NCBI GenBank assembly: GCA_051294905.1
Contig: CM119381.1
Location: forward strand, 11,222,001-11,286,000
Reading direction: 5' to 3'
DNA length: 64,000 nucleotides
Origin: Botryllus schlosseri
Lineage: Eukaryota
The notes under the pieces are model-generated. The model did not search any database. It was given only the letters and a program-made list of their open reading frames with translations, and had not been told where the DNA came from. The translations under genes were made by a program, and so were the position numbers. Each line of letters begins with the position of its first letter. The first letter of the stretch is position 1. Below, piece after piece: positions 377 to 63,352 of this stretch.

Positions 377-735
377 CCTCACAAGCATTCCTCTAAATAA
401 TTCTGTAAACATCCCGTCCGCACGAATCACAACTTGTTTCAAAGCTGAAACTTGCCCTGTACTGGCAGGGTCTTTTTCCACCTAAAATCGTGTACATTTC
501 AATTGCATAGCAACCCTTGTTTGAATTTTAACACCGAAATTTCAAACGCAACAGCATGGATACAAAATCCAAATATTTGTATAGAGACTAACCTCAATAG
601 TGATTTTTGGAGTGTTCTTGCAGTCTGAATCCAGCAGTAGATATCTACAAGAGGCGCTGAACTCGTATTCTCCAGCATCAAACGTTTCAAAATGTCTTCC
701 GTTAATTAATCCGCACCACTTCTCCGTTACAGAGG
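377..735 (-). CDS. Start of a von Willebrand factor type D domain (exons 593-735 and 377-481)
   Basis: Exon 593-735 gives [48 protein letters not shown], matching the vWD opening C..G..H..TFD...Y.F...C.Y.L...C. Phase-0 exon 377-481 gives [35 protein letters not shown] and is followed by a GTAAGC donor. Confidence 0.8.
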
Positions 736-3700
736 CTAATTTAGTATAAAAAATAAGGTGAAACATTGAAATCTATTTTCATTCGTGGAAAAACCATATC
801 TACCTGGAGGCTGCTTGACTTCTGGTTCTGAAAAGATTCGGGGTTCAGTTAGAAGAGATAAAAAAATATGTGAATTTGTGACATACCATCAAGTTCCTTG
901 TCGTTGATGAGTATTTTCGTCGTTTCTGGTTCTTTGATTGTAGCTTTGCTGGGAAATTGCAGTGAAACGTAAAATGTTTCGATCCCTTCCAAAACCGGCT
1001 TCTCGTTGTCGTCGAGAATATGGATGGTCACTGGAACTTCTCGTTGCTCCGCAGCAAACTCAATCAGTTTTTCAACTGGTTTAAAATCTTCATTTTCTGA
1101 AACGATACAAAACGAATGAAAAATGAAGCAACATTGTGCAACTGGAAGTTCGGAGAAGACAATTGAGTATTCCAAAACAACATATAAGATTATAAGTGGA
1201 ATATTGTGTCGCATCGGCCAATTGTATACCAAAATACACAAACTAAAATATTACAATTGACTCGAAATTGATTCAGTATCAGAATATAGTAAATATTAAA
1301 TAGAACACTAGCTTGTGCTCGAGATTACCGAACCACGATATGACTTATCTATTTTGCCTATCGACACTTGATTTTCATTGTTTGTCCATTTTATGTTATC
1401 TTCATCTACTATTAATTCAGGATGCACGATTCTCATTTACACGTTCTAGGCCAGTGGTTCTCAACCTTTTTCGACTCGTCGTCCCTTTATCAAGCTAGTC
1501 AAATATTTATCGATCCCCATATTTTCGGATCTGAGGAAGAGGACATATAAACGGAAAAATTGTACAGCTGACTCTGATCTCTGATAAATAGAGTAAAAAA
1601 AGGTCAACTTGACTCCGCGATCCCTGAAAATCCCGGCACCTGGGGATAGTTTGTGGCGAGTGCACCGTTGTTTTAGTTAACTTGCGGCAGTTCCAGACTA
1701 ACCCGTTTTTCATGTGTATTTTGTGCCAGTATGCGGTTGCTGGATGATTAAATATATTCGACTGAACATTCAAACATGTTCACCCCCTTCGTACGTTTTC
1801 GCCCCCGTTTCTCAAAATCGATCACCTTGGGAATCACTATTCCTGGCCAAGGTGGGTGTTTGATTGAAAGACTACTCTATGTAGCTTTCACTCATTCCTA
1901 GCTTTTTATTTTATCATAATCTTGTCATGTAGTCATATGATGTTATTAATAAACTGAACTGAACTGCAGCTTCAATACAAATGATTAGAAATTTTCAGTG
2001 ATATACAAAACGTTATACATTGAAAAGACGAATTGATACCGACCAGTTGCACTTGTCGGCTCCTCAAGAGTGTGCGTTTTCACTGTGACGAAAGAAGGTT
2101 CTGATAGATCCCCGGCACGCAGCACTTTGACAGTCACGAATCCGACGTCCTCCGACACTTCAAAGATTAGCCGGTCCAAATATACCTCGGGCACTGCAAT
2201 GAAATATACAAAGCGTCTATTGAAATCAGGATATCATATGGTTTTCTGGAGATGGTCCTTGCAGGCACTAAAACAGTGGATAGAATGCTGTTTGAGTTAG
2301 CTAGCTTTTAAATTAGTTGAAGACGATGCATCTCAGACTTTTTTATTCAAGCATGATAATATGCAATAATTTGTCTAGGAAACGTGAGGTATATTGAATT
2401 GAAAAGAGAGTACTAAACCTACATTGCAGGTCTTCATCAATGATCACGTTTGCTTCTGTCATGTCTCCAAGCATAGCTCCTTCTGGGGAACTCAAAAACA
2501 CGTTGAACGCCTCTGTATCTTCTGTCACCTCGTCGTCAATGATTTTAATGAAGCATTCGGCCAATGTTTGTCCTACAATACCGAAATATTACATGAGGGT
2601 GCATACTGCATATATTCTTCATTAAAATTGAAATTTATTTTACAACAACTGAAAGGACCCAGTAACCTGAACAGAACAAGAATCAACCTTGATTATGTCT
2701 CAAGTATTAGGATTAGTATCTTTGGATAAAAAATAATCTTCATTAATAGCATCAAATGGTGTTTGACACAAAGGCTGATTGTCGCTATTGATTCTAGATT
2801 CATAGTTACATCAGAAAAAAAGCCATGCATGAATGCAATCAATATTATCGGTTGAAAAATGTTGTTATAGCCGCGACAACAATGAAGATGACTATATACA
2901 TATGGCTCAAAATATATTTATGTACTTACGATGTAGATCTACGGTACATCAATCAACGACTGCACATTTTCAATTTAATACAATAATATATAAATATGTA
3001 CAATACTAAATAAATGACAGTGTAACCCGTTACCTGGCTTAAATTCGATTTCAGAGGAAGTGTCTTCAGTTCGTGGCATGTAATCCTCATCAGAAGAAGC
3101 CGTTTCATCGCCAGTATAGCAAATCACAGTAGAATTCTTAGCGATATCTCCACTTCTTTGTACGGGAATAATTAATTTTCCTGACGATTCCTTGACCACA
3201 TGATCAGGCTCAGTAAATTGAATAAAAGCAATTGATGAACCTAGGAAACACAATAGACGGTGGTGGAATTGCGTGACCGATATGAAATCCACAAAAACGT
3301 ACCAGGATGTAGTCCGTCGTCTGGTTGGCCTGGCAAAATATTAAATGAAATATATGATTATCAAGTGTTTGAAACAAAGCCCCCAACAGTTTGATTTACA
3401 TCATAAGCAATGCTTAGATTACCGTGACATTACAATAGACTAGTTTTATGTCACGCACATGGCCATATATGTATGCAAATTTTGGGGCATATAATACCGA
3501 CATGAACATCCATCACTTATAATCTTATAGAATTCCAATTACAGGTGCTCATCATGATATCAACAAACTGAGCTATAATCACATTATGTCACATCATAAG
3601 TTTTGTAAGTTTGAATAATTCCTTTCGTTAGTAGACCAGACTCAAATAAATAGTACTGTAAATTGTATCACTATTGTTGTAAATGCTAATATACGTGCTC

Positions 3701-6700
3701 ATTGCACAATCACCTTCTTTGTCAGTAATAACAATCTTCAGAATTTCAGGATTTTTGATATCAGCGCCGGAGGGATCTTTCAAAGTGAGATAGAATGTTT
3801 CGTTTCCTTCATCAGAAATCTTATCATTGACAATCTGTATCTGTACAGGCGCCTCTGTCTGTCCCGCTTTGAATTCAACAGTCTCACGCACTGGTGTGTA
3901 GTCGTCTTTCTCTGATAAATGATTTATGATTAAAAATCGGCATATATATGTGGTGCAGGAATGTCTGCTAGTAGAAATAGTCACATTTATTGAAAAGTAC
4001 ACCAGTTATTCGAATGAATTTTGATTGAATAGACAGTTGGTATGATTTAATAACGTTTATACTGATTTGAAAATTATATTACCGACAAGATACTTGTAAT
4101 TTAGAACGTGTAGAAACGCGGAGAAAGCTCTGTGTTATAATGTCAAGTTTGAATATTTTATTTTCATTTCTATTTATTTCACAAACATTACCAATCATAT
4201 AATTAATTCAGTCTGATCTGCTGGAAACATGTTTTGAAAGCACATAGTACAATTTAAAATTTTTTGAACCTGTTGCGGACTGCGGCTCTTCTTTTGTCAA
4301 GGACTGTACCAGGACAGTGGAAGGCTTGGAGATTTCACCTTCTCTTTTAACCGTAATCTCGAAGGATTTTATCGCCTCTGGCACGGTGAATTCGGTATTT
4401 TTGAACGATACAGAGGGTGCTGAAAAAAAATTTAAATATTTCGCAAACAAAGCAACAAATCTCTCAAACAAGTGAATACTAGTGATACGATATGGTATGA
4501 TCAAAGGTCGTCAGTATCAAAGTAACAAAGTACTTTTATGGAGTGGACTTTTAGTTAACAGATTTCAGTTTCATAGGCAATACTTACTTTGTATCTTACT
4601 TGGAAATTTGTAACTTAAGTATAAATTCACAACATTACTTCTACTTCTTGCCAACGATGATGACTTTGACTACAGTAGGGTATGATATGATATAACTATC
4701 AATTATGAATGAAGCAACATACTGTCCGAATCGTCCATAATCCTGATGAGGAGACTTTTCGGCTCTGCTATCGCGACTTTGTCGGGTGTTTGCAACAGCA
4801 AATCAAATGTCTCATTTCCTTCAAACACAGGATTATCCTTATCGTCGAGAATCGCTACTTTGATAGTTGCTCTGTCTTGTCCAGGAGAAAAATTGACAGT
4901 TTCCGCAACTTTCGTATAATCTTCTGCTTCTGTTAAAATGATGCAATGCGAATATTTGTCATGTGGGCAAGATTGCTGATTCTTACCTGTTGCCGAATTT
5001 TGCTTTGATACCACAGTGACGCTTCCGTCCATAGACAAGTCCCCTTGCCGTAACACGACAACATCAACTGAAGGAATGTTTTCTGAGACGGTGATCTCGG
5101 TGTTTTTGAATGAAACTGTCGGTGCTGGAAAATCAAACAAAAATACAATATCAAGCCCCATCAACATGAATGCAATACAAAAGCGAAGCTGCATAGTGAC
5201 CGTAAGGGGTACAAATCCTTTCCAATAAGAAAATCAGTGAAATACCCATAACAGCAAAAGTAATGAAGCAATATTTCTGAAATTCCGACTTAGGGCGCTT
5301 TGGTAGATATCTTAAGATTGGTGAAAATTTTGTGGACGAGGTTCGACAATTTTTGGCAAAAAGTTTCACGGCGAAATTCATCAGTGAATGGATTCAAGTC
5401 ATCCTAAAGAATGACAAGTTTTTTTTTATCCCAACAGGGGGTATTATGTGAAAAAAATTTTGCTTCAAGAAATTGGGATAATTGACTTCGATGAACTTGT
5501 ACACATGAAAAAACCTTTTATGATGGTCCGCTTTACAAGTTATGTCAAACTCAACTGTGTTTCATACACTCTTTGACATTAATTTTTCCGAAATGTTAGG
5601 GTCTTTGTTCTGTAGATATGCCGGTTTCATTTTGCTTGTCGTTGGCATGATAAGAGACTCTCTTTCTTGATCAACTAGTTCAGCCAGTAAACTTACTAGC
5701 GGCGGCTTCTTTTTCGATAATCGTGACCTTTAATGTGTCAGGCTGCTTCAGATTAGAATCTTTGGGATTTTGCAGGACAAGGTAAAAGATTTCATTTTCT
5801 TTCTCCATGACACCGTCATCAACAATTTCAATTGGAATAGATGTCTCGTTTTGTCCAGGTTTGAATTCGATTGTTTTGTCAACAGGAGCGTAATCTTTGG
5901 ATTCTGAAAATTCACAAACAGATATTACCTGCCGCTGCATTTATTTGTAGGAATTGCCCAGCAAATACTCAGTCTTACTGCACACTGCACAGTTTACAAT
6001 GCGTAAGACAACAAGGTGTGTGCAACCAAGACAGGCCCAGCTTATTAATGTTAGATTTCAGACAAAATACAGCAATATATACAGCAAACAATGCATTCTA
6101 TCATTCTGTAGTAGTGAATATATTCAAAGTATTATGCTATTATATAACACCTTACATCACCCTTTCACTTTTACTCAAAAGAAAACATGAAATATATGGA
6201 ATTGAAAATGCTTTTAAAAAGCACCTGTAGCGGAATTTTCCTCTCCTTTGCTCAACGATACCACTGTTACTGATGAAGACCCGGATAGGTCGCCCTTTCT
6301 CACAACTTCCACGTCAAAAGTTCCAATCACTTCCGGTACTGTGAACTTGGTGTTTTTGAAGGATATCCATGGCTCTACAAAAAGGTATTCAAGATGTAAA
6401 TTTCAGTCATTTCAGTCATCGCTAGAGAGAGAGAGAGAGAGAGTCTTCATTTTGATTGAAGCGAAAACAGAGCAAACAAATGGCAGCAATAATGATTGAG
6501 AAAATACATACGCACAGTATTCAGTATTGGGTGGGGATGATAAATATGACCTTGGAAGCCAACTAATCTGATCAAACAGGTAGATTGTTTCTACACAATC
6601 TGGCTGTAATTAGTGTTGGTAGAATAAAGAAAACTGAAGAAAATAAAAGATAGTAGCAAATCAATGAAGCAATCTCTGGGCTAGGTAGGGCAACATTGTT

Positions 6701-9700
6701 GATATGACGAAAAGAGGTAATCAGGTAGGTCATTTTTAAATCGATTATCGATATTTTGTAGTAATGCATTCCAGATGATAGGTCCTGAGTATTGTCATAT
6801 CTCTCTCCGTCAGATTTTCTCTAGAAATAATAGTTGCAGAAAGTAAAGAAGTTATACCGTCCAAACTATCAGTAATTGTGATTGGAAGCTTCTTGGGATC
6901 CGATATAACCAGTTTCTCTGGTGCTTCCAGCACTAAATGGAACGTTTCATTTCCTTCCAAAACTGGATTTATTTCATCGTCGAGAATAGTGATGGTTATA
7001 GTTGCGGTGTCGTCGCCTGGTTGGAAACTAATTGTTTCTTCTAGGTCTTCAAAGTCTTCTGATTCTGTGATTGGATGATGAGGATATAGCGCTTCTGTTG
7101 TATGCCATGTAATGAGTCTTACCTTTGGCTGAATCTGGTTTTGAGACCACCTTTACTTTACCAGGCATCCCCAAGTCTCCTTGTCGTACTACTGTTATAT
7201 TGACTTCACCGATGTTTTCGGATACTGTCATTTTAGAGTGCTTGAAAGCAACGGTTGGTGCTGATGAGATACAGAGACAAAAGATGTAGGGAATGACAAT
7301 TTTTTCAGAACAAAGTCATATAGTTACTGGTTGGTTCTTTCTCCGTTATCGTAATATTCAGTATCTCGGGATCTACTACAAAGGCGTCTTCGGGATCTTT
7401 CAAAACGAGACGGAAAATCTCATCTCCTTCTCCAGCTACATTGTCAACGACTATTTGAATTGGAACTGGAATTTCTTCTTGCCCAGCATCAAACGTTACA
7501 ACTTCATCAACTCGGAGGTAGTCCGAAGAATCTATATTATGACAAGATGCAGTGCATTATTAGTATTTTTATTAGTGCTTTTCCTACAAAATGGAGAAAA
7601 TTCAGCATTGGTGATGAGATTCGGTGAAAAAGAAGACGGAAAAATATAAAAGATTCAAACATGAACAGAATCGAACGCATATCCAGTAATAATAATTCAC
7701 CTGTGGCAGAATTAGGCTCTCCTGTGCTGTTAGATACCACTTTCACTGTAGATGAACCAGAGAGGTCTCCTTCTCTGCGTACTTTTACTTCGAACAAGCC
7801 AATACTTTCAGGAACGCTCAACTTTGTGTTTTTGAATGATACCGCGGGCTCTGAATTGGTGCAAATATTAAGCTGGCTGAAGGGGTCGCAAATTTTGAAT
7901 AAAAGCAGAAATAAGATAACCCCTCTGTGTAATGTATTTATGCATGTAACATTTATGCAATATGATTGAAGAGACTCGTGGAGGTACAGCACGCAATCGC
8001 AAAATATATTCATATTGAAATAGATCCAGATATTTTCGGCTGACACTTGTCAGGTGTAGGGCTGGGCACAATGATTCCAGTACTCGAATCTGAATCGAGT
8101 ATTAATTTCAATGATTCGAGTCGAGTACTAAAAGACCAGTTTTTCGAGTACTGAAATTATACGCTTATCGCCACTGAAAGTTAATTTATCAACGAGAATT
8201 ATAGTTTCCATGCTAATTTTCACTGTTGCAGCCTTGAAGCCTTGATTGGCGATATCGTAGTATACGAAAAATGTAATACAAAGCTATGAATGTTGCTGGA
8301 CGTAGCGCATTTCTGAAGTCATGATTATTGCACAACATTGTCACAAAGTGGAATGAAATCAGTATGGTCGAAAAAATACCGAAGCATCATTTATGAGATG
8401 GGTATCAGACATTATATTCTTTGTGGTGGCCTAAACGGTACATATTTGAACTTCAGATGCATTACATTATGTTATGACGTCATAATGGGTGATACTCGAT
8501 TACTCGACTTGACGCATATTCCGTGATTCAGAATCGAATCACTCAGGTACTCGATTTTGCCCAGCCCTAGTCAGGTGTAATATGGCGACACCCGCATAAA
8601 AATGTGGATTTTTATGCCTGGATTATTTGAATTTTTGTGCTTGTGATGACATAATCGGTAGTAAGACCGTTGATGTGCAATATTCTTCTGAATTCTCTAC
8701 TAGTTGCTGACTACCCGATGAGTTTCAGCAAAAAATATTTGGGTTCATGATAATAATCAATTGCATATTGCATAATTGATTCCTTGACTGATATCGTAAT
8801 TGAATCATACCGTCTGTTTCGTCAGTGATTCTGATCAAAATTCTTTCTGGATTGGATATCACAACTTGGTCGGGTTTCTCTAGTACAAGATGAAAGGTTT
8901 CATTTCCTTCTCTAATCGGTTTCGCTGTGTCGTCTAAAATTGTCACGGTCACAATGGCTGCATCTTGTCCAGGCTTGAATTTGATAGCTTCTACAAGCTT
9001 CTCGTAATCTTCGGCCTCTGTTGTTGATAACGATGAGAGTGGTATCATTGCTTTCATTCCTGACACGACATAAGCTGTACCTTTAGCAGAACTAGGTTCT
9101 GAAGTGACGGTGATTTTCCCGGGCACGGATACATCTCCTCTTCTAACCAATGGAACTTGGATTGTGTTGATGTTTTCAGATACAGTGATTTCATTGTACT
9201 TGAATGAGACAAATGAACCTTGGAGGCAAAAGTAATGAGTTGACATAAGGCTGTTTGCATGTAATTCAAATAAAATCATCAGTTAAAAAAGCGGTTCAAA
9301 GCAGCAATGTTAGGGTGTCAATTTTCCATATAAAGCAGATTTGAACTAGGACTTTAGTTTAAATAGGAGCTCAATCCACAACTACATGTTTTCAAGTCAA
9401 ATCAGAGAGTCTGTTTGTTTAACCCATCGAAATTTACAGAGCTTGTATTAGGACGCAAAGAGGCCAAAAAAGTTACATCTGCTAAAGGAAAAAAATGGGA
9501 AAATTTTATTGTGCTTCAATATTTTTCAGATTATATCAACATGTTATCTTTATCATAATATTATTATAACATCGATACAAAAATAAAGGAATGTTATGTA
9601 ACTTAACATTACATGCAAAAATTTACACACTTCTGATTTACTATGATTTAAAGTTGAACAAAATAACAAATGTTTGTAAGTCAAACAACGAATACGAAAA

Positions 9701-51700: not shown

Positions 51701-54700
51701 CCCAACATTACACAAGTATGATTGACATTGTAATATGTACTATTTACCAACCTGTACATCCTTGCAGAGGATCACCAGTATAGCCATTGTGACAAATACA
51801 CGAGGATGTTCCTGGCAGATTTTTGCATTTCGCGTTAGCTTTGCAATTATGGGTGCGTGTCTTGCATTCATTGATATCTGATAGAAAGCAGATAGAACAA
51901 TGAATTGTAGGATAAACAGCTTTCAACATAGCTCTAATGATTTTGAATAATATATTCATATTGAAATGAACCTGAAAAATTTTGACCGACAAGCGTCATG
52001 GGCAATCATTTGGGTTCATTTCTATTGGAATATAATATACAATTGTATATTGAAGTTGTGTACTTCCAAGAAGCTCTTCTAATGATTTTATGTAAGTGAA
52101 TCACATCAGCTGGGTAAACCAAAGGATGTAGTGTTTCGTCCTAACGAAATCTACCTGTGCATGTTTTCCCATCTCCATCATAGCCTTCCTTGCAGGCACA
52201 TTTGTAACTGCCTGGAGTGTTGACACATTCAGCCTTGTCATCACAATCGTTAGTATCATCACTTTCACATTCGTTTACATCTAGATACAAAGGTTGCAAA
52301 TGGAAATAGTGCGATTATTTAATTGGTTCCTGATGCAAGCTAACAAAATACCTTTGCATTCAACCTTTGCATCACCGGCGAATCCAGGTAAGCAGGAGCA
52401 CATAAATGATGCATCCGTGTTGTTGCATATAGCGTTACTTGTGCAATCGTGTGTACCAGTAGTGCATTCATCAATATCTGCAAATCCAGGATAAACTATT
52501 CATATTTTCAAATTTCCAGTGCTGGAAATTAATGACATATTTCGGATACACCTTAAAACCTGAGCAGAGGTCATTTCAGACGATCCATTCTAACTTTTCA
52601 TTCATGTCGTGCCAAGTCTAATATTCGATTATTCAGTTTCTTTTCATTTAAGAGCATTTCCACTTTTATAAAAATGTCGCTTTTTTCAAGCAACATTGAA
52701 GGCCACTAAAAGTCTATTGGTTCAGAAAAGAGTCCTTGTCGCAAAACATGTTATTCTGAGATCGCAAAATGGATCAATATTTCTAATTCACAATTTTTCA
52801 TTGCATTGCTGTAACTGAATGAATCTATCTGAACTACACGATATTGTTACAATGGGAATACAATGGGAAAGATACAATATTCCACATGTATCCAGGTATA
52901 ATTCTACGCCATCATTCATATTGGAAAGCTTCATTGAAGCTATATTTTGTGTTATACAATATCCATTGTAGAGAATGAAACAATCACAATACAAACCTTC
53001 ACAAACAGAATCATCACTCTGTTGATAACCCTCTTTGCACTTGCAGAAAAAACTACCAGGTGTGTCTTCGCACACAAAATCTTTGGCACAAGACTCAGGC
53101 CTATTGCACTCGTTTACATCTGAAAGATATCCATAATATTGCTTCACGAAACCAACATATGGAATTGTAAGCATTACTTTTGCAAATTTCCCCTTCCAGT
53201 TTGTATCCATTATTACAAGAGCAAGTATAACTTCCCTCTGTGTTGTTGCATCTGGAATTCACGGGACACGGATTGTCCAGACATTCATCGACATCTGTAA
53301 ATAAGCAAACCAATCGATAAAAATTTGTGATAAAAAGATAATAGGATGCTTCATTTGTCGCATTTTGCAGAAAGATAGTTGGTAAACGTTCCAAGATCAA
53401 TTTATTTACATCATTCATCACCACAGTCTGTAGAGCATTGTATCCAGCCACCAGTATTGCTATATGTACAATATATAATACCCCTTGCACTAATGACTTC
53501 ATGTAATCCATATATCTGTTGCAACGTTCTTAGATAGGTCAGTCCCACAGCATGGAGTAGAATGAATAATATACCAGGGTAACAACAAAGATTTACAGCA
53601 GAGTCACTACATCCCTGACAAGGCCATACAGCATTTGTTTTCCCTCCATATGCCCAAAGGTCGCTATATTTCCCTTGAAGAGTAAATTACCAGAACTATT
53701 GATAAGCAAACATTGAACTCATGGACTAACCTAAAGATACTCGTACAATTACAGACACCTGATTCCCAAATGATAATGCTGTTACAGCAAGATGTTGATA
53801 CATTACAAAACACAATTTAAAAACGTAATGTAATATTTACCGGTACAAGAATCATCCTCATCAACGAATCCTTCTATGCAGGTACAGGTAAAGCTGCCTG
53901 CAGAGTTCGTGCATTTTTCATTTGCCCCACAAGCATCTTTGATATCACACTCGTCGATGTCTGACAATGTCAAAGGGCACACAAAATTAGTGCTGAAACT
54001 TTTTCAAATTGATAAATTGTAGTATAATAGAAGCATTTTTAAGCATGGGTTTCATTTATACGCTACCATGTCGCATCATATCCAAAACAATTATTATCAA
54101 AAATCTAACGAGCCAGGCAGAATCAAATATTTGAAATCACCAGAGCACTGATCTTTTTCGCCTGTGTATCCCTCTTTGCATTGGCAAGTAAATGAGCCAT
54201 TGTTATTGACACACTTTGTATTGCGTTCGCAATCGTCTGTTGCTCTTTCGCATTCGTTTATATCTGGATTGAACACATGACTTGGATTAAATGTTTCTAA
54301 ACACATTCAGTGCGACACAAAGGTAGTGAATTCGATCCAAATATTATATGCGAACTGTTGCGAATAAAGTTGCAATGTATCTTAGAGCTGGCTGAGTTTT
54401 CATATGACATCCACAGAAATGTGTAGTGATGCAACCAGATTGAACCAATCATACATTCAGTTTCCATACATTTACCCGGTGTCGACAAATCAAAGAGGTG
54501 GGTTTTCAAAATGACTAGTTGAGGTCTTTTAAGAAAACAGTGACCTTGGACACAGTAGCTTTGGATTATTTTTAAATTAGGTTGTAAAATCTGCAGTGTT
54601 TGCAGTAGTGATTAATGCAGACCAAATGGTTGTGCAAACAGTTATAAAGCATGCTTCAGAATTACTATACACCAGAGGCATATAGATATTGGTACAGTCA

Positions 54701-55104
54701 TTTATGTAATCTTAAAATATAATGTTACCAATGCATCCATCTTTCTTTTCCGACATCTCAAACCCGTCAATGCACAGGCAAATATAACTTCCGATATTAT
54801 TGACGCATTTAGAATTGTTCATACACGGGCTCATTACTTCATCACTGCATTCATCAATATCTTGAAAAATATAGAGTCAGCATTAGTCACCAAGAAATTT
54901 TACTATGTCAAATTATATACCGATGCATGTCTTTCCAGATTTGTCCTGTTTGATATATCCATCCTTGCAAACGCACATGTAAGAGCCAACAGTGTTGGCG
55001 CAGTCAGCTTGTTTGCCACACGGTGATGTCAAGCATTCGACAATATCTAGAAATACCAATTTTGCTGCATTACTATGCACAACTAATTTGACTATCAAGT
55101 GACC

Positions 55105-55135
<31 letters not shown>

Positions 55136-58100
55136 CGGTAATTCATCACATTGAGGAAAATATGGTGACACAACCTTTATTTTGCATGGTATGCAAATCC
55201 TGAACAAAGGCACTGGGCTGCATTAACACAGAATGGCAACATTCATTTTGTGTACTATCGAGGTTGAACTGGACTTGACAAGAAAGGTTCATATGTAGGA
55301 GAAATGCTACTACACTCCCTATACAATGCATATAATACACATACACACATCATCCAGAAAATGCGGAATACGTGAAAAATTAGCAATCGCTAGGCCAGTT
55401 ACTATGAAACCATTTCGTTGAGCAATTGAGAGTTTATTGCACAGAGAATGAGTACCCAACAATTAGTTATGAATAAAAATAGGTTTAAATATAAAACTGA
55501 TCAAGCAGCAGCATAACTTTTAGATCATCTAATTATATATAAAGAATTTTGGGACATGTGAAGAATAATTTCCTCACTCAAATTCCATTTAAAACCATGT
55601 TATATATGTATGAAAGCAAATATCATTATCATACCTATGCATTTTCCTGCACCATCATCTTCAAAACCTTCATTGCACTTGCACTGATAGGAGCCCGGTT
55701 GATTGGTGCATGTCGCATTTTCCCCACAGACTGACGGATCATCGCATTCATTTATATCTGAACAAATGTTTCAAAATTGTATCCAAACACGAAGTTATCA
55801 TGACTTTTGAAAAAATACCTTGGCAGGATGTGCCATTTCCAGAATAGCCATCTCTACAAGTACAAGTGTGGCTTCCGGGGAGATTCTGACACAATGCGTT
55901 AGCATCACATTTTGGCATGCCTTCGTTACATTCATCGATGTCTGTAACAATTTAAATATATATATCAAACAGAGAGTTTAGCAAACATCTCACTTCTGAA
56001 AATTGAAAATGTATTAGCGATAGGGCGGCGATACATGAGCATTGAGCATGAACAAACATGAGACATGAAGGTATATTTGCGTCGTATTGAAGTACTTGAA
56101 AATGTCAATTATACCTTCGCATTTGTCGTTTTTCTTGGAATATCCATCTTTACATTTACACATATAACTTCCGACAGTATCAGTACAGTTGGCGTTATCT
56201 TTGCAAATATCTACGTCGTCCACACATTCATTGATATCTAGATATATCATAAAATTGTAGTAGGAAGATAGAATGAAATTGTTACAATTTGTAGAACAGA
56301 AATTGACTTACTTTCACAGTTCTTTACCCCATCTCCATTATATCCAACCAAACATGTGCATGTGAATGTACCAGGTTCATTTTTGCACTCGGCGTTATCA
56401 TGACAATTATCTAGTCCTTTTCTACATTCGTCAACATCTAAAACAAGATGTCGTCAAAATACATCACAAAGTTTGCCACAAACAGTAATAATGCCATACC
56501 TCTGCATGATTTAACACCATCACCAATATATCCTTGATCACAGATGCACAAGTAACTGCCTATTGTGTTGGAACACTGCGCGTTCTCTGTTAGACAGGTA
56601 CTGGTACCAAGTGCACACTCATCCACATCTGCGTAACAACGCCAATATAGTTGAGATTGAAAATCTTACATACACGGGATATATACCTGTACAATTTACG
56701 ACAGCGTCGCCTTCAAAACCATGCCTGCACCCACATTCAAAGCTGCCTTCGGTATTTACGCATAATGCATTATCGCAACAATTGTCCATGTCTTCGACAC
56801 ATTCATCAATATCTGTTTTTATGGAGATCAACATGAATATAATCACAGTAGGATATTGCTGCCTTAAGAACATTGCAATAACATTTAGAAAAGAAATCCC
56901 TGAATACCACTTTGTGTTACGAAAAAGTCCACATAATTCACAAATGGACATGTTTTTTTTAAATTCTACAAGTGTGGACTGTGTATGGACCATCCACACT
57001 ATCAGAAATATCACTAGTAATCCGAGTGTAACTGGGTTTAGACTGTTGTAATTGTAGCCAGTAAGTCTCACTGTGTAAAATACTGCAAGTCTTGATTAAC
57101 ACAACCCTATTTGAAATATCAGTCATTAATATTACAACTGCCATTGTAAAAATCATTCATTAGGCAATTCACCCATTTTAGCACCGCAAAATGTGGCTCA
57201 AACCTATGAATGCCGCTTTCCTGAAGATACTGTTATAGTTACTCCTAATTTGGTCAAATTATTTTTCTTCAGGTATTCACTCACCCTGACAGGATTTGAC
57301 TCCGTCCCCAGAATAGCCATCCGAGCAAGTGCAAGAAAAGCTACCAGGGCTGTTGCTGCAATTTGCGTTTTCATGACAATTGTCCACATTTGTGACGCAC
57401 TCATCAATATCTTAAAAACAAAAAGAATACAAGCAATGAAATGATGTTACAAAATAAGCCCATATTCTTATGTATCCATATGTGTCGCATTGTGAGGTCA
57501 AAAATCCAGACAAGTGGGATGAGTCATTGAATAAAGAAGCACAACCAGAGTTGCAACTTGTATTAGTGTTTGACATATTGTGAGTCTATTTTTGAAAATC
57601 GCCAGCCAATTAATAAAAATAAACCCTATGAATGAAATACTTTACTACCACATATTAAAATAACTCAAATCAATCGATGGACAAAGGAATCATACACGAC
57701 ACATACCTTGACAAAATTCCCCGTCCCGTTCCCATCCATTATTACATGAACATTGGAAAGTTCCTGGTAAATTACCACAAAATGCACTTTCAGAGCAGTT
57801 GTCCATGCCCGTCAGACATTCGTCAATATCTGCAGAAATTAATGCAGGATTACCTCAGGTAATCCTTCAGAAGGCGAAAAATATAATCTTGACGTGAATA
57901 GAAAGAAGTTTGGTTACTTCATTTTCAGATTACTTCAAACTAAAGATCCTACTTCGACTCTTTGGAATTCACAATATTACCATCGCAAAGCTTTCCGTCA
58001 CCAAGGTATCCATCCTTGCATACGCATTTGTAGGTTCCATTGTTTACACAAACGGCATCTTCGTGACATATTTCGGGATTTTGGAGGCAGTCTGTATTAG

Positions 58101-61100
58101 GAGCAACAAATCAAATATAGTTTGAGGCCATTTACTTGAATTTTATTTCTTACCGGGTGTTGGGTCTCCACGTAGTTCCTCTGTAAATGGAAATGAATCA
58201 ACGACATGTTAGATCTTACGGAAGTATATATTGGTGTTACAAGTGGCAGACAAGTTGTTTGAGTTGAATATTCGATCTCAGGAAAAATATTCATTATAAA
58301 AAAGCGACTTGGCCTTCATCTTGGCTACCTGTCTATCCTTTTTACTAGTGATTGAATATTAGAAATTACATTAAATGGAATTTATAATTTCTTGCATATT
58401 ATATATATCTGGGCCCATCGTTTTTCAATAAATAAGATTTTCTGTTAGCACCCTTACTTGGTCATTGGCGGGAGGGGTATGTACCTTATTTTAATCTTAT
58501 ATTTTTTACTAAAAGATGGAGACATATCCATAATGGTTGACTCGAACATATGAATTATGAAGTGCAAAACATGTTTCCAGTTGATTGCAAAGGATATAAC
58601 GATATCTGCAAGTGATTACATCAGGATTTCAGATGATATTGTCAAACAAAAATATGTTATATCAAATTTGACTGGTTGGTAAATCGTAATGATGTGTTGC
58701 AGGCTTTTAGACATTATAATGGGCAAATTACACACATTTTTGCGATCCTGTCGCATTATGCTGCCGTCTTCAAATTCACTGACTTTCAGCACCTAAAAAT
58801 CCTCCCTGGCTATCTCTATCATGTGACTGGATAGTAGCAACATATTATTCACACACCGATTTCCTCGTCGATTATCATAACAGTAGCCCCATCTTTGTCA
58901 CCGATTTTAACTGGACTGTCATCATCATTAGATGGATTGATCAGTAGTACGATAAAATTTTCATCATCTTCATCAATGCCATCGCTAACGATTGGAATTT
59001 CCACAATCTTTCTTGTTTCATCTAAATTTATATAAAATATGACATGTTTTCACAAGGTAACTTCAATGCAACAATATATACTAACCAGGTTCGAAAACCA
59101 CAGTTGATTTTGAATCGGGTGTGCGGGGAGTGAAGTCCTCCAAGTTTTTGGCGGAATTCTCTGTCGTTACCAAGTTTATTGTGGTCTTTTGCGAAATATC
59201 ACCACTTCGCACAATAGGAATCGCGACTTTTTCCAGAACTTCTAAAACACTGTACTTTTCATCTTCCAATTCTATCGTTGTCACTGTAGAAATAGACATG
59301 GTGTGATGTAAAGGATTGCGTGTAAATTCTTCAAGATACATTTCGGTTACGGACTCTACAAACACTATCAAATTGTTCAGTCATAAAATTTTACCGTCAG
59401 ACGGGTCCAATATGTTGATTGTGGCTTCGCCGATTTCTCCTATCTTTGCGACTGCATCGACTGCTAGATTATCAGGTTCCAGCAATGTCACGGTGAATTT
59501 TTCAGGCACCTCGTCCAATTTGTCGTTTATTATCGAGACAGTGACTTTCTTCTGCGTTTCGTCTATAGCAAAATCACAGGAATCGAACACTGTTCGGGAT
59601 ACTAGATAAAGTTAAAAACACTTGTTCTCAGCCTTTGTAAATGGTAAAATTACAAAAATTAGACGGACCGAATAATCTTCAAAAATCACAAATGACCCCA
59701 CTACAAATAAATTCATCCCAAAATTCTCCAATTAAAAACTTTATTTTGATTGTCTGGTTTCTTTTGAAAGAACTGTGAGTGTACTGTTTGCTAGTCTTTA
59801 ATACACCAAGAAATGTCTCTAAATCGTACCGCCGAAATTTACCGAATTCTGTTAAATAAGTCTACTTAGCTTTCACATATTACAACTGGTTGTAAGCTGC
59901 TTTGAAACCATTTGGTACAACAATTGTAGAATTGTAGCATATGGTAGGTTGAAAGTAGAGCATGAACTATATATATATTATGGCACGATGGTGTTTTAAA
60001 TCTGATGTGTCATTTCTCTAAATAATAACCGTGCATCCGACTTCTTGAATTTTGCTACTGAGATATACAATTGTGCTATATTAAGCAGACTGGCAGGAAA
60101 GTTGACACTTGACGGCACTAGTCTGCGGACCAGCGGAGAACCATTGGAACTAAAGGACAGCCAGTCCCAGTACCAGTCGACTATCAGATAAATATTTGTA
60201 GGCGTTGGAAAGATTGCTTTTACCTGGCTCAAACATAACAACAGACAACGGATTTTTTATCTTTTCAACAAAATCCTCGGGAGTTTCGGCAGTTCCTGAT
60301 TGTGTGACAACGTACGCCGTTGTTTTATTCGATAAGTCGCCAGTTCTCAATACAACAATCTCAACTTCTTCTTCATCTTCAATGACTGTGTATTCATCTT
60401 TTTCGAATTCCACAGTGGTGGCTGAACATGTATAATCAAACAGTTACCACTGATTGCAGAGATAGCTAAAAAAAGCTTCTTGGAGGTACAGAACTTCAAT
60501 ATACAATTGAATAGTATTTTCATATTGACATGAACCCGAATACTTTCGGCTGACACTCATCAGGGGTAATCGTCAGAATATCATATATCAACAATTGTAT
60601 CACAAATTGTGACATGAAATTCTGAATACGAGAGCGTTCAATGTACCATTTGTGTACCATCTAAAAATAGTACATTGAACGCTCTCGTATTCAAAATTCC
60701 ATGCTGGTGATGTCATATCTTGTGATGTAATTGTTGATATACGATGTTATTTTCCATTCTCTACTAGTTACTGACCAGCTGAAAATATTCGGTTTCATTT
60801 CAATTTAGCTAGAAACAAAGTATTTTTCCTAGAACACAAGTGGATATCCTAAATCTATAGTATTTACTCACACGGTTTCTTTGAAGAGTAATCTTACACA
60901 TAAACATTACTAAATTTTGAAGCAAAAGCAAATATCACAAACATACAAAAAAATTTGGTCTACTAAGAAGTAACTCGACAGATAGATATAAATTATGTTC
61001 ATGAATGAAATCATCGCAAGTATGGCCAATAGGTACCCATCATGTAGAATGGTGTGAAATTTGAAGGTTGGCAGGAAATTGTACAGGAAACATAATCCTC

Positions 61101-63352
61101 AGATACCTCTTCAAGATTGTTACTTCGGCGGTGTTGCAACCACTCGCTGCTAGCTATCATTAGAAATCCAGTTGATATGAAAGTTGGAAACGATTCAACT
61201 AAAGTGTTTTAATTCAATAAAATCAATAAAATAACACAATTACTTACTTGGCTGGTCTGTAATAACCACAACAGATTTGTTTTGTTGGCCCACGTCTACC
61301 GGAATAGAAGTGTCGTCATTTTCCGGTTTGTCCAAATAGACGACAAACTTCTCTTCATTTTCTGGTCGGTTGTCCTTGTAAATCGGAATTACGACAGATA
61401 CTTCTTCAATGTCTAAACAAACAAAAAATGTGCGATAAATGAAATTCAGGGGAGAAGGTTAGGTTAAAGACATAACAATTTTTTGTATCTCTCATAAACG
61501 TATTCGGGGATTATTGATTGGAATAGCATAGTTAAGTGATTAATCCAAGGAAAAACAATATTTACCTGACTGGAATACGATATCCGATACTTCCATATCA
61601 GGTCGTGGTTCAAAATCCTCATTATCAGCAGTGTCTGGTTTTGTTACCAAACGAACCTTCGATTCAGGCTTGAGGTTTCCAGATCGAACGACGTCCAAAG
61701 TAACATTCTCGTATTCGCTTGTTTCATATTTTGGCTTTTTAATATTAATGATTGTTCCTAGAAGAACGAAAATATAAACCCAATTGCCGTGACTCGTTAC
61801 GAAGGAAAATCTATTCGAGTAGTGGGTGATATTGACCCTGGTGGCAATTTTGAGAGAATGAGGTGAAAAATATGAAGGGATTATTAGGTGAAATCTATTT
61901 GAATCTTGGTGGAATTGGTGGAATTTTGCCATTTTCAATTTATAAAAATCGATGGATATTAATGTGAAAGCGGCCCAATTATCAATTTCTCCCAGCCCGC
62001 AACAGTTGAATGGCATCAAATCGAGGAAAATTATGTCTAATTCAACTTGTTTGGGAATTCTCAAAACTGTGCAGCACCGCGTTATTGAAGTGCATCCTAA
62101 GATTAGTTTCCTTGACAATATTATTTATGCAAATCAACTATTTCAGTATCAAAAACTGTTGAAGTAGAAGTAGTATGGAAAAAGAACTACTTGATTAAGT
62201 GAAACAAATAGATAAAACCTGCTTGAGTACTACAGAAAAGTAGAAGTGCTTCACTACTGACGACCTCTAGCTTTTAGGGGGTCGATGAGTAAGAAAAGTT
62301 TGGGAGCCGCTGATCATAATGCCACAGAAAACATTCCCATAAACACCGAACACGATTGTACTTTTCGCAAATAGTAATAGTACTTTACCACTGGATGGAT
62401 CTTCAATGATATTAACAGTCACAAGAAGTTCGGGATCATTCATAGCATCAGTGAGCGATCCAGTGACATTTTCAACACTTTCGTCGTCATCAATGGGAAC
62501 CTTCACTATTGACTGAATTTCATCTTCGCCTGTAAGAATTATTAACTTGCTGATACTTTAATATAACCAGAATCTGCACAAGGCAAGAATTACCAGGTTC
62601 AAATACCAATTCCTCCTCGATTGGTTCTGCCTTTTCATCTGGAGTATCGTTTAGTCGGTACGGTTTAATGATTGAATCGACAGGTGTCTTCTTTGTTGTG
62701 TCGCCGTGACGACCAAGAGTGATGTTTAAGATGACAGTGTCGTTATCTTCAACGTACGACAAATCTTTGACATATACTTTGGTTCCTAGTGAAAAAAGTT
62801 TCTTTGAATTCACTACCCCCGATCAATATTTCAAAACACTATATTTACCGTCAGATTCATCCAAGATTGTTAATGTTGTTTCAATGATTTCACCCAGTTT
62901 TGCCAAAGTATCTTCAGCTAGATTTTTTGGTTCCACCAGCTCAAGCGTGAATACCTCTGGATTCTCGTAGATTTCGTCGTTCATGATTGATACGGTTACA
63001 AATTGTTCCGTTTCACCTAGATTTTTAGACATCACAAATCACATGTAGGCCAGCTCATTGCCTCATATTTAAAAATATATCGGGCATATTTCAATAACAA
63101 GTTTTGGAGGATGTTTTTTTTAAATTGACACTATCGTATTTTACAAGTCGTTACCGGGTTCAAACACAACATTCGATTCAGGATTCTTCTTCCTCTCCAT
63201 GAAATCATTATCAGAGTCGGCAGTTCCAGGCTTCGTGACAACGTAAACAGTCGTTTGATTGGACAAATCTCCTCTTCTTAATACGGTGATATTTACTTCT
63301 TTTTCATCCTCCATAACTGTGTAGCTATCTTTCTCGAATTCCACCACAGTCA
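377..63352 (-). CDS. Giant multi-exon extracellular-matrix-type protein, partial at both ends: Calx-beta x5, RGD linker, cbEGF x69, Calx-beta x48, vWD (about 175 exons, about 9,200 aa in window)
   Basis: Minus-strand ORF fragments translate to Calx-beta halves and D-I/V-D/N-E-C EGF modules, each bounded by AG/GT. Exon lengths are multiples of 3 with phase-1 junctions that join without stops, for example [24 protein letters not shown]. No start, signal peptide or stop codon is identifiable in the window. Confidence 0.9.
804..827 (-). CDS. 24-nt linker micro-exon (EPEVKQPP) between the last Calx-beta and the vWD domain
   Basis: cttttcAG|AA CCA GAA GTC AAG CAG CCT CCA G|gtagat; phase 1-1; flanking introns are 59 and 68 nt. 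Confidence 0.7.
887..3240 (-). CDS. Two terminal FREM2/FRAS1-like Calx-beta domains (exons 3034-3240, 2423-2572, 2044-2193, 887-1096)
   Basis: Translations include ...[21 protein letters not shown]...EIEFKPG|[26 protein letters not shown]... and ...[34 protein letters not shown]...; GT-AG boundaries, phase 1. Confidence 0.85.
1452..1839. mobile_element. Degenerate non-autonomous hAT (Charlie/MER5-like) MITE
   Basis: Left end CAGTGGTTCTCAAC, decayed right end CTTGGGAATCACTA; flanks TTCTAGGC and TTCCTGGC match at 6/8 as a decayed TSD. Confidence 0.55.
3303..3329 (-). CDS. 27-nt linker micro-exon (GQPDDGLHP)
   Basis: attttgccAG|GC CAA CCA GAC GAC GGA CTA CAT CCT G|gtacgt; phase 1-1; a 62-nt intron separates it from the next Calx-beta exon. 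Confidence 0.7.
3714..9218 (-). CDS. Six diverged Calx-beta domains in three old two-domain units (exons 9081-9218, 8811-9017, 7701-7850, 7328-7531, 7123-7260, 6858-7064, 6225-6374, 5697-5903, 4987-5124, 4723-4929, 4270-4419, 3714-3911)
   Basis: 138+207-nt exon pairs alternate with 150+198/204/207-nt pairs. Motifs: F..T.ITVSE...V.V.R.GD, DY..V...V.F.PGQ, I.DD....EGNETF.L.L..P. Confidence 0.88.
6424..6443. repeat. (AG)10 microsatellite
   Basis: Direct reading of the agagagag... run inside an intron. Confidence 0.9.
8057..8569. mobile_element. Non-autonomous hAT-superfamily MITE (513 bp)
   Basis: TIRs TAGGGCTGGGCA...TGCCCAGCCCTA; perfect 8-bp TSD GTCAGGTG at 8049-8056 and 8570-8577; repeated subterminal ACTCGA/GAATCGA motifs. 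Confidence 0.88.
9731..10940 (-). CDS. Diverged '18th' copy of the two-Calx-beta unit (exons 10791-10940, 10517-10726, 10021-10164, 9731-9958)
   Basis: Exon sizes 150/210/144/228 and sequences ([15 protein letters not shown]...NPKKATG; ETTQPVQI...[10 protein letters not shown]) parallel the array unit, but the introns are unrelated in sequence and length. Confidence 0.85.
11002..29503 (-). repeat. Intragenic tandem array: 17 near-identical 1092-bp units, each with 4 exons and 4 introns
   Basis: The ORF track recurs at exact 1092-bp spacing (11580, 12672 ... 29052). Unit layout: exons 213, 144, 210 and 150 nt plus introns 60, 193, 60 and 62 nt, which sum to 1092. No indels were seen between copies. 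Confidence 0.97.
11002..29503 (-). CDS. 34 Calx-beta domains (about 4,060 aa) encoded by the tandem array. First-unit exons 11002-11214, 11275-11418, 11612-11821, 11882-12031, repeating every 1092 bp
   Basis: Spliced unit is 717 nt = 239 aa: [33 protein letters not shown]...[23 protein letters not shown]...IIIDDEKED, then [31 protein letters not shown]...[25 protein letters not shown]...[11 protein letters not shown]. All junctions are GT-AG, phase 1. Confidence 0.92.
30117..33059 (-). CDS. Four unique Calx-beta domains between the EGF array and the tandem array (exons 32916-33059, 32651-32857, 31971-32168, 31636-31785, 31134-31283, 30808-31017, 30546-30743, 30117-30269)
   Basis: Examples: [21 protein letters not shown]...VSFKAG|[23 protein letters not shown] and [17 protein letters not shown]; phase-1 GT-AG exons. 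Confidence 0.87.
33165..33585. mobile_element. Decayed TIR element with clustered GACTCG/GACTTG subterminal motifs (hAT-Ac-like MITE)
   Basis: About 8 GACTCG/GACTTG motifs are concentrated at both ends. The right end GTGACTTGGTTACAACCCC only loosely mirrors the left end. No TSD found. Confidence 0.45.
34281..58091 (-). CDS. Uninterrupted array of 69 EGF-like (mostly calcium-binding) domains in 64 exons
   Basis: Exons (high to low): 57981-58091, 57707-57829, 57285-57410, 56687-56812, 56500-56628, 56312-56437, 56115-56237, 55819-55941, 55635-55757, 54921-55046, 54729-54860, 54141-54263, 53841-53960, 53178-53294, 52997-53119, 52352-52477, 52155-52280, 51752-51877, 51378-51500, 49335-49583(x2), 49150-49275, 48823-48942, 48636-48758, 47911-48039, 47719-47850, 47187-47432(x2), 46605-46859(x2), 46176-46301, 45990-46115, 45802-45924, 45422-45547, 45190-45315, 45005-45127, 44819-44944, 44632-44754, 44020-44142, 43811-43957, 43623-43748, 43440-43565, 43254-43379, 42808-43056(x2), 41824-41943, 41636-41764, 41443-41568, 41195-41314, 40279-40407, 40097-40222, 39793-40038(x2), 39611-39733, 38771-38896, 38512-38634, 38325-38447, 38142-38264, 37299-37427, 36960-37076, 36544-36663, 36217-36342, 35947-36072, 35736-35864, 35548-35670, 35373-35489, 34821-34940, 34637-34762, 34281-34406. 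Consensus D-I/V-D/N-E-C...C-x-N-T-x-G-S-Y/F-x-C-x-C..G-Y/F; every exon is 3n and phase 1-1. Confidence 0.93.
37790..38085 (-). mobile_element. Candidate tRNA-derived SINE (tRNA-Glu-like head) in an intron
   Basis: Minus strand reads ...CTAGTGACGATAAGCGCCCACCGCTCAGGCGGCCCGGGTTCGATTCCGCGTCGG. It has a clear Pol III B-box GGTTCGATTCC (38024-38034) but no intact cloverleaf, and is followed by a GC-richer body of about 200 nt. The 3' boundary is approximate. Confidence 0.55.
49629..50824 (+). mobile_element. Internally deleted hAT (Charlie/SPIN-group) DNA transposon, 1196 bp, with transposase remnants
   Basis: Perfect 14-bp TIR CAGGGGTTCTCAAC/GTTGAGAACCCCTG; perfect 8-bp TSD GTGTAGCA with central TA; subterminal GCGGCCCG repeats; stop-interrupted plus-strand peptides [22 protein letters not shown] and [16 protein letters not shown]. 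Confidence 0.92.
55105..55132. repeat. (AT)14 microsatellite
   Basis: Direct reading of the atatat run in an intron. Confidence 0.9.
58154..58180 (-). CDS. 27-nt micro-exon encoding E-E-L-R-G-D-P-T-P (RGD motif)
   Basis: catttccatttacAG|AG GAA CTA CGT GGA GAC CCA ACA CCC G|gtaaga; strong splice sites; the phase 1-1 frame is fixed by both neighbouring exons. Confidence 0.75.
58857..63352 (-). CDS. Five N-proximal Calx-beta domains (exons 63155-63352, 62849-63016, 62594-62785, 62389-62529, 61566-61757, 61248-61412, 60224-60421, 59395-59562, 59086-59283, 58857-59021)
   Basis: Example: [48 protein letters not shown]...VVFEPG|[29 protein letters not shown]. The second domain (62389-62785) is degenerate. 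Confidence 0.87.
60575..60750. repeat. Long intronic inverted repeat (foldback hairpin)
   Basis: Perfect 24-bp arms TGAATACGAGAGCGTTCAATGTAC (60623-60646) and its reverse complement (60670-60693) enclose a 23-nt loop. Imperfect pairing extends about 50 nt further on each side. Confidence 0.85.

Follow-up and report, generated by a model that had tools for sequence, protein, structure and literature searches.

A predicted giant extracellular protein of Botryllus schlosseri combining Calx-beta, EGF and VWD modules and containing a homogenised coding array

The window analysed here, a stretch of 64,000 nucleotides from the ascidian Botryllus schlosseri, raises the question of whether a long run of exons on one strand belongs to a single gene and what kind of protein such a gene would encode. 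An earlier note, made from the letters alone, had read one continuous spliced frame of about 9,200 amino acids (aa) that was open at both ends and carried 53 Calx-beta domains, 69 calcium-binding EGF (cbEGF) modules and a VWD domain, an architecture it took to be undescribed and possibly lineage-specific. Our analysis suggests, with moderate confidence, that one very large ascidian gene, of which the window contains the middle and the C-terminal part, encodes an extracellular, acidic, calcium-binding filament protein with VWD-mediated multimerisation. If it is one protein of at least 9,547 aa, it would rank with the largest chordate matrix proteins predicted, and for tunicates it would be a candidate structural or adhesive fibre that depends on calcium. 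It would join three module types related to calcium binding or multimerisation that are not known together.

Gene model and domain content

The exon chain was built by dynamic programming over AG/GT-bounded open segments, scored with matrices for codon usage and splice sites that were derived from the window. In a first pass, 178 exons encoding 8,179 aa were obtained, nearly all of them in phase 1 at both ends. This model was based on generic splice matrices and was dropped because it missed weak GTCTGA and GTTTGA donors. Unrestricted chaining was also dropped due to spurious out-of-phase micro-exons and two split-codon stops. Chaining restricted to phase 1-1 exons resulted in 193 exons and 9,445 stop-free aa from 63352 to 804. 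For the final model, three donors of this chain were corrected, one spurious micro-exon was removed and two VWD exons read by eye were added.

The resulting model runs on the minus strand from 63352 to 377 and comprises 194 exons, all with GT-AG splice sites, which by predicted splicing form one stop-free frame of 9,547 aa with a computed pI of 4.18 and a mass of about 1.05 MDa. The frame described in the earlier note was therefore recovered at a somewhat greater length, and it is likewise open at both ends, with the start and the end of the gene lying outside the window. Of its 193 introns, 192 are in phase 1, and the single phase 0 intron lies inside the VWD. The median intron length is 62 nt; 109 introns measure at most 70 nt and 18 exceed 500 nt, up to a maximum of 1,794 nt. 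All domain-like long open stretches are located on the minus strand, the G+C content of the window is 36-41% and it is free of N runs. No other gene was found in the window by Rfam, a tRNA scan or Pfam searches of the ten longest non-model ORFs on either strand. The longest intron (49584-51377, 1,794 nt) has a G+C content of 0.41, compared to 0.34-0.36 in the junction introns, and contains no Pfam-recognisable ORF. Two introns 8.4 kb apart share an 87-nt inverted repeat with 79% complementarity (51992-52078 and 60471-60557), which may represent two copies of a small mobile element.

The whole 9,547-aa model is composed of Calx-beta domains, EGF modules, short linkers and the start of a VWD, all read from the minus strand. 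In gene order, five Calx-beta domains on 10 exons, two per domain (58857-63352), are followed by an RGD-containing micro-exon, 69 EGF modules (34281-58091), four Calx-beta domains (33059-30117) with a 42-nt linker exon (29641-29682), a 17-unit tandem array with 34 Calx-beta domains (11002-29503), ten further Calx-beta domains (887-10940), a 24-nt linker micro-exon encoding EPEVKQPP (804-827) and the VWD start (377-735). The first block, whose upstream end is open, and the block of four were recovered from the exon list and by an HMM built from the model's own domains, with matches at model positions 1-581 and 3458-3920, respectively. The ten domains after the array were identified by the exon chain, the same HMM and Pfam.

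This HMM detected 53 Calx-beta domains in total, 5 before and 48 after the EGF block. The Pfam Calx-beta profile (PF03160) scored 28.6-48.3 bits on half-domain exons among the ten exon references run, at a cut-off of 27, including 35.7 bits for 63156-63350 and 28.6 bits for 62850-63014, and also matched 12699-13145, 12095-12304, 3035-3238 and 888-1094. An acidic motif of the DDxxxExxExF type, which forms the calcium site in known Calx-beta domains, is kept in 50 of the 53 domains, and a domain carries a net charge of -13.5 on average.

The Calx-beta domains fall into two classes by the position of their intron, which is in phase 1 in both. One class is split after the F-x-P strand into exons of about 66 and 50-55 aa and includes all five N-terminal domains as well as 31971-32168/31636-31785, 30546-30722/30117-30269 and 3034-3240/2423-2572; each of these three domains located after the EGF block contains a pair of cysteines. 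In the other class, the intron precedes the D-Y/F motif and separates exons of about 48 and 69 aa. Many introns within Calx-beta domains have a length of about 57-64 nt (12951-13010 and its equivalents, 7065-7122, 4930-4986). Those of the array, with 60 nt, and those within ORFs from related samples (P0002, P0012, P0046, P0100) are in frame and free of stops. Such short introns are read through by ORF callers, and their retention would add about 20 residues. The 60-nt introns of the array are strikingly conserved between samples (83% and 90%).

The EGF block comprises 69 modules on 64 exons, five of which encode two modules each. Exactly six cysteines are present in 64 modules, while three have seven (56687-56812, 45190-45315, 43811-43957) and two have four (47719-47850, 41195-41314). 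The N-terminal calcium-binding consensus (D/N-x-D/N-E/Q) occurs in 61 of the 69 modules and the Asx-hydroxylation consensus in 59. The spacing between the sixth cysteine and the first cysteine of the next module is five residues in 59 of 68 links, as in fibrillins. On the double-EGF exon 49336-49581, Pfam reported EGF_CA (PF07645) with 66.5 bits and EGF_3 with 68.8 bits, and sequence matches in the PDB include NELL, ADGRE5, Notch1 and a fibrillin cbEGF pair. TB (8-Cys) domains are absent from the block, since all 64 exons encode EGF modules and the 413 cysteines compare with 414 expected for 69 six-cysteine modules. The seventh cysteine of three modules may provide free thiols for intermolecular bonds.

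The micro-exon between the first Calx-beta block and the EGF block (58154-58180) has 27 nt, is symmetric in phase 1-1, encodes EELRGDPTP and is bounded by the acceptor ttacag and the donor gtaaga. It could be a cassette exon. RGD occurs four times in the model, compared to about 0.9 expected by composition, and two of these motifs lie in a conserved Calx 'RxGD' context; the RGD motif alone is therefore not significant.

The visible part of the VWD covers its first 82 or so residues, encoded by exons 593-735, which is entered in phase 1 and left in phase 0, and 377-481; the remainder lies beyond the window. The Pfam VWD profile (PF00094) matched 593-733 with 29.2 bits at a cut-off of 22.9, covering profile positions 1-40 of 156, whereas the second exon run alone gave no Pfam match. 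A phmmer search of the VWD start against the PDB returned FCGBP (1.8e-13) and VWF (2.4e-9), in addition to MUC5AC, MUC5B and MUC2, which supports its identification as a VWD. The VWD start reads NGRH where many VWDs have GDPH. Calx-beta, EGF_CA and VWD were thus confirmed by Pfam as the domain types on representative exons, and the earlier counts of 53 and 69 were reproduced. The description as cbEGF applies to the modules with the calcium consensus, and the VWD to its visible start only.

Predicted product and continuity of the gene

The acidic motif and charge of the Calx-beta domains, in combination with the spacing and consensus of the EGF modules known from rigid cbEGF pairs, led us to interpret the product as an extracellular filament stiffened by calcium. 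That it is secreted, rod-shaped and multimeric is what we infer, and so would be any assignment to a tissue. Tandem Calx-beta sandwiches and a fibrillin-like cbEGF run would bind Ca2+ at their junctions at the calcium level of sea water, and the Ca2+-bound junctions would produce a stiff, extended rod. A cbEGF module typically measures about 3 nm and a Calx-beta domain 4-5 nm, and with such domain sizes the visible rod would be roughly 0.4 micrometre long. The calcium-rigidified rod proposed in the earlier note is accordingly compatible with the motifs and spacings counted above, the rod itself being a prediction. The VWD assemblies of VWF, mucins and FCGBP form disulfide-linked multimers, and by analogy the VWD after the last Calx-beta domain could mediate disulfide-linked multimerisation here. 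The seven-cysteine EGF modules could contribute intermolecular links, and the RGD on its own linker micro-exon may be an integrin site.

An alternative that we consider unlikely, albeit with a probability worth weighing, is a membrane-tethered surface protein. The giant Calx/EGF stalk would then be attached to the cell by a transmembrane, GPI or GAIN-7TM module encoded beyond the window, comparable to FRAS1, to the ankle links of ADGRV1 or to membrane proteins with a VWD such as MUC4, SUSD2 and zonadhesin. The C-terminus falls outside the window, the eukaryotic sequences closest to the Calx-beta domains belong to the membrane-anchored FRAS1/FREM2 type, and several known membrane proteins have a VWD near the membrane. 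However, no transmembrane segment, GPS or CSPG repeat is present in the 9,547 aa seen, and the GDPH motif, at which MUC4 and SUSD2 typically undergo autocleavage, is missing from the VWD start. Both observations count against the tethered form as far as the visible part of the gene goes.

The filament reading also depends on the exons belonging to one gene. The exons were joined by predicted splicing, and symmetric phase 1-1 exons chain in frame even across gene borders. Two or three adjacent genes on the same strand (Calx; EGF; Calx-VWD), perhaps in a tunicate operon, could therefore have been read as one. The introns at the block junctions fit this explanation in part: at the Calx-to-EGF junction, the RGD micro-exon is flanked by introns of 676 and 62 nt, and the EGF-to-Calx junction has one of 1,221 nt, so that the larger ones are well above the 62-nt median. 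Nevertheless, the domain arrays themselves contain introns of 500-1,794 nt as well. The earlier note had named the two larger junctions (58181-58856 and 33060-34280) as the places where a break between transcripts might be found. Neither contains a stop-bearing terminal exon or a first exon with an ATG and a hydrophobic leader or signal peptide ending in a phase-1 donor; the sole ATG ORF in the junctions, at 34069, reaches a stop after 31 aa. AATAAA polyA hexamers occur in the junction introns at about the chance rate, and the first Calx exon past the EGF block (32916-33059) lacks an initiator context. For these reasons, separate genes appear improbable, and we infer a single transcript from the predicted splicing.

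The Calx-to-VWD link is the most secure of the junctions in the sequence because its two introns, with 59 and 68 nt on either side of the 24-nt linker exon, are so short. Word-based protein searches with the EGF-to-Calx exon and the VWD exon returned no match, exon-sized queries being unable to reach giant annotated proteins. The protein search with an array exon matched genomic ORFs of other samples and no transcript.

A further reading by analogy, which we regard as very improbable, is that the product represents the counterpart of a sponge aggregation factor in a colonial chordate, of convergent or ancient origin. It would then be a giant Calx-beta/VWD scaffold whose homogenised two-domain array, probably variable in copy number, could aid tissue adhesion or self/non-self contact between colonies. 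The likenesses and differences that bear on this reading are given with the sponge proteins below.

A homogenised coding array

The array at 11002-29503 consists of 17 tandem units of exactly 1092 bp, without indels between units. It was measured directly by comparison of the units, as Tandem Repeats Finder was silent due to its longest period of 500, and was also supported by Pfam. Each unit contains five exons (150, 210, 45, 144 and 213 nt), which encode two Calx-beta domains and a 15-aa linker in 254 codons. The array as a whole thus contributes about 4,300 aa, or about 45% of the residues, and 34 of the 53 Calx-beta domains. Since these domains stem from near-identical units, the total number of Calx-beta domains and the size of the protein depend on the assembled copy number.

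Identity between units is 99.3-99.8%, or about 99.6% within the array. Relative to unit 8, interior units differ at 2-8 of 1092 sites and the two edge units at 26 and 55. The variants at the 29 sites that vary among the interior units are ordered and partly alternate, some of them recurring in every second unit or in units four apart; one, for example, is found in units 1, 3, 5, 9 and 13, another in units 2, 4, 6, 10 and 14. This pattern in the sequence suggests two-unit and four-unit higher-order duplications that are real rather than assembly noise. Just downstream of the array, five exons (10940-9731) have the exon layout of the array unit and 51% protein identity to it; on this resemblance they are an old, diverged copy of the unit.

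An exhaustive library search with one Calx-beta domain of the array detected a 140-aa ORF (P0002) with 83% identity on 1,113-bp contigs of three sequencing runs. One of these, L002 (Logan contig, SRR25569780, 1-1113), has a 30-nt end overlap and is thus the circular collapse of a tandem unit of 1,083 bp. Over its full length, it is 84% identical to the 1092-bp unit of the window. Compared with the window consensus, its exons have 87.5% identity and no indel, whereas its introns have 75.8% identity and contain all 15 gap positions. All five GT..AG splice pairs are conserved, and dN/dS is 0.17. The indel-free exons, the kept splice sites and the low dN/dS indicate that the array is real coding sequence and, as measured between these two sequences, a repeat under purifying selection. 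The comparison of about 99.6% identity within the array with 84% between samples further shows at the sequence level that the array is homogenised within each genome by concerted evolution.

Orthologous sequences are not limited to the array unit. In run SRR25569784, the ORFs P0054 and P0100 correspond to the post-array domains at 10506-10730 and 6811-7116, with 75% identity each. A single contig of 4,946 bp carries both, arranged and oriented as in the window, with two further Calx-beta ORFs between them. The lineage-specific origin considered in the earlier note has to be restricted accordingly: a related sample carries orthologous segments, and these are not confined to this genome.

The two-domain array would expand and be homogenised via unequal crossing-over, and protein length is probably variable between individuals through the array copy number. 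The gene offers a clear-cut example of exon shuffling by means of phase-1 modules, combined with a coding macrosatellite on which both purifying selection and concerted evolution act. That the locus is partly an artefact, with an array over- or under-expanded by the assembler, or a decaying non-functional relic, would agree with the exact, indel-free unit length, the few differences between interior units, the difficulty of assembling near-identical units and the lack of transcript matches, but is highly improbable given 9,547 stop-free aa with canonical splice sites throughout, ordered variable sites unlike random noise and an independent data set in which the orthologous unit collapses to a circular contig with a dN/dS of 0.17.

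Comparison with known proteins

No described protein with Calx-beta, cbEGF and VWD in one chain was found in searches that did not reach long annotated tunicate proteins, and the undescribed architecture of the earlier note holds within this scope. A library search with a single Calx-beta exon, a weak probe for architecture as it represents one domain, yielded no match of the same architecture. Its matches were mainly bacterial adhesins but also included FRAS1. P0001, the best long match examined, is a repeat adhesin encoded in a bacterial locus of the LapA/LapD/LapG type, and the Calx-beta architectures of P0003 and P0007 are likewise of bacterial type. The two most cysteine-rich long matches, P0093 and P0098, are FRAS1 orthologues with VWC, 5-12 Cadherin_3 (CSPG) repeats and five Calx-beta domains. 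An Atlas cluster named FREM2-like ranked third by features.

FRAS1, FREM2 and sea-urchin ECM3 resemble the predicted product as extracellular matrix proteins bearing Calx-beta domains. They differ in having five Calx-beta domains, 12 CSPG (Cadherin_3) repeats, VWC, furin-like repeats and a membrane anchor, and they have neither a cbEGF run nor a VWD. CSPG (Cadherin_3), VWC and furin-like repeats and a membrane anchor are all absent from the 9,547 aa seen here, the upstream part of the gene being outside the window. ADGRV1 (VLGR1), with about 35 Calx-beta domains, also has a giant extracellular chain and forms calcium-dependent filaments. In contrast, it contains a pentraxin/LamG domain, EAR repeats and a GAIN-7TM end, without an EGF run or a VWD. 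None of the GAIN-7TM, EAR and pentraxin modules occurs within the window, beyond which both gene ends lie.

Fibrillins and LTBPs share the long cbEGF run, the five-residue spacing between the sixth and the next first cysteine and the Asx-hydroxylation consensus. However, they carry TB (8-Cys) or hybrid domains between their EGF modules, which are absent here, and fibrillins have no Calx-beta domain and no VWD. An orthologue of FRAS/FREM or fibrillin was rejected because the defining modules of these proteins are absent from the part seen; by the same absence an ADGRV1 orthologue appears unlikely, although a receptor end would lie beyond the window. The VWD domains of VWF, gel-forming mucins and FCGBP match the VWD start best. 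These proteins lack Calx-beta arrays, and here only about 82 VWD residues with NGRH for GDPH are visible, with no C8, TIL or cystine-knot seen in the window.

In the literature on proteins with Calx-beta and VWD, only the sponge aggregation factors were found to combine them, although both terms also co-occur in work on scallop byssus. AqAFC and AqAFD consist of a signal peptide, about 13 Calx-beta domains, a VWD and a Wreath domain (PMC5400394), the latter predicted to have a VWD-like core (PMC11670116). Like the window, with 48 Calx-beta domains followed by a VWD start, they have an extracellular Calx-beta array and then a C-terminal VWD. Introns are almost all in phase 1 in both, with 154 of 155 in the AqAFs (PMC5400394) and 192 of 193 here; this bias is common to Calx-beta genes in general (PMC5400394). 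The two also share Calx-beta domains that are divided between exons, as well as intragenic repeats whose unit comprises two Calx-beta domains together with the introns (PMC5400394). Both are acidic, and the sponge proteins are calcium-dependent matrix or adhesion molecules, as predicted for the product described here.

The differences are also considerable. Sponge aggregation factors have two to three thousand aa and no long EGF run, compared to the 69 modules here. They are defined by the C-terminal Wreath domain, and the equivalent region here lies beyond the window. Their Calx-beta domains extend over three exons in a different register, and the family has been reported only from demosponges. 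The resemblance is genuine at the level of described layout and gene structure, and membership in the family would at most be possible. This likeness nevertheless prompts the question of whether comparable scaffolds are a recurring feature of animals with tissue fusion or aggregation.
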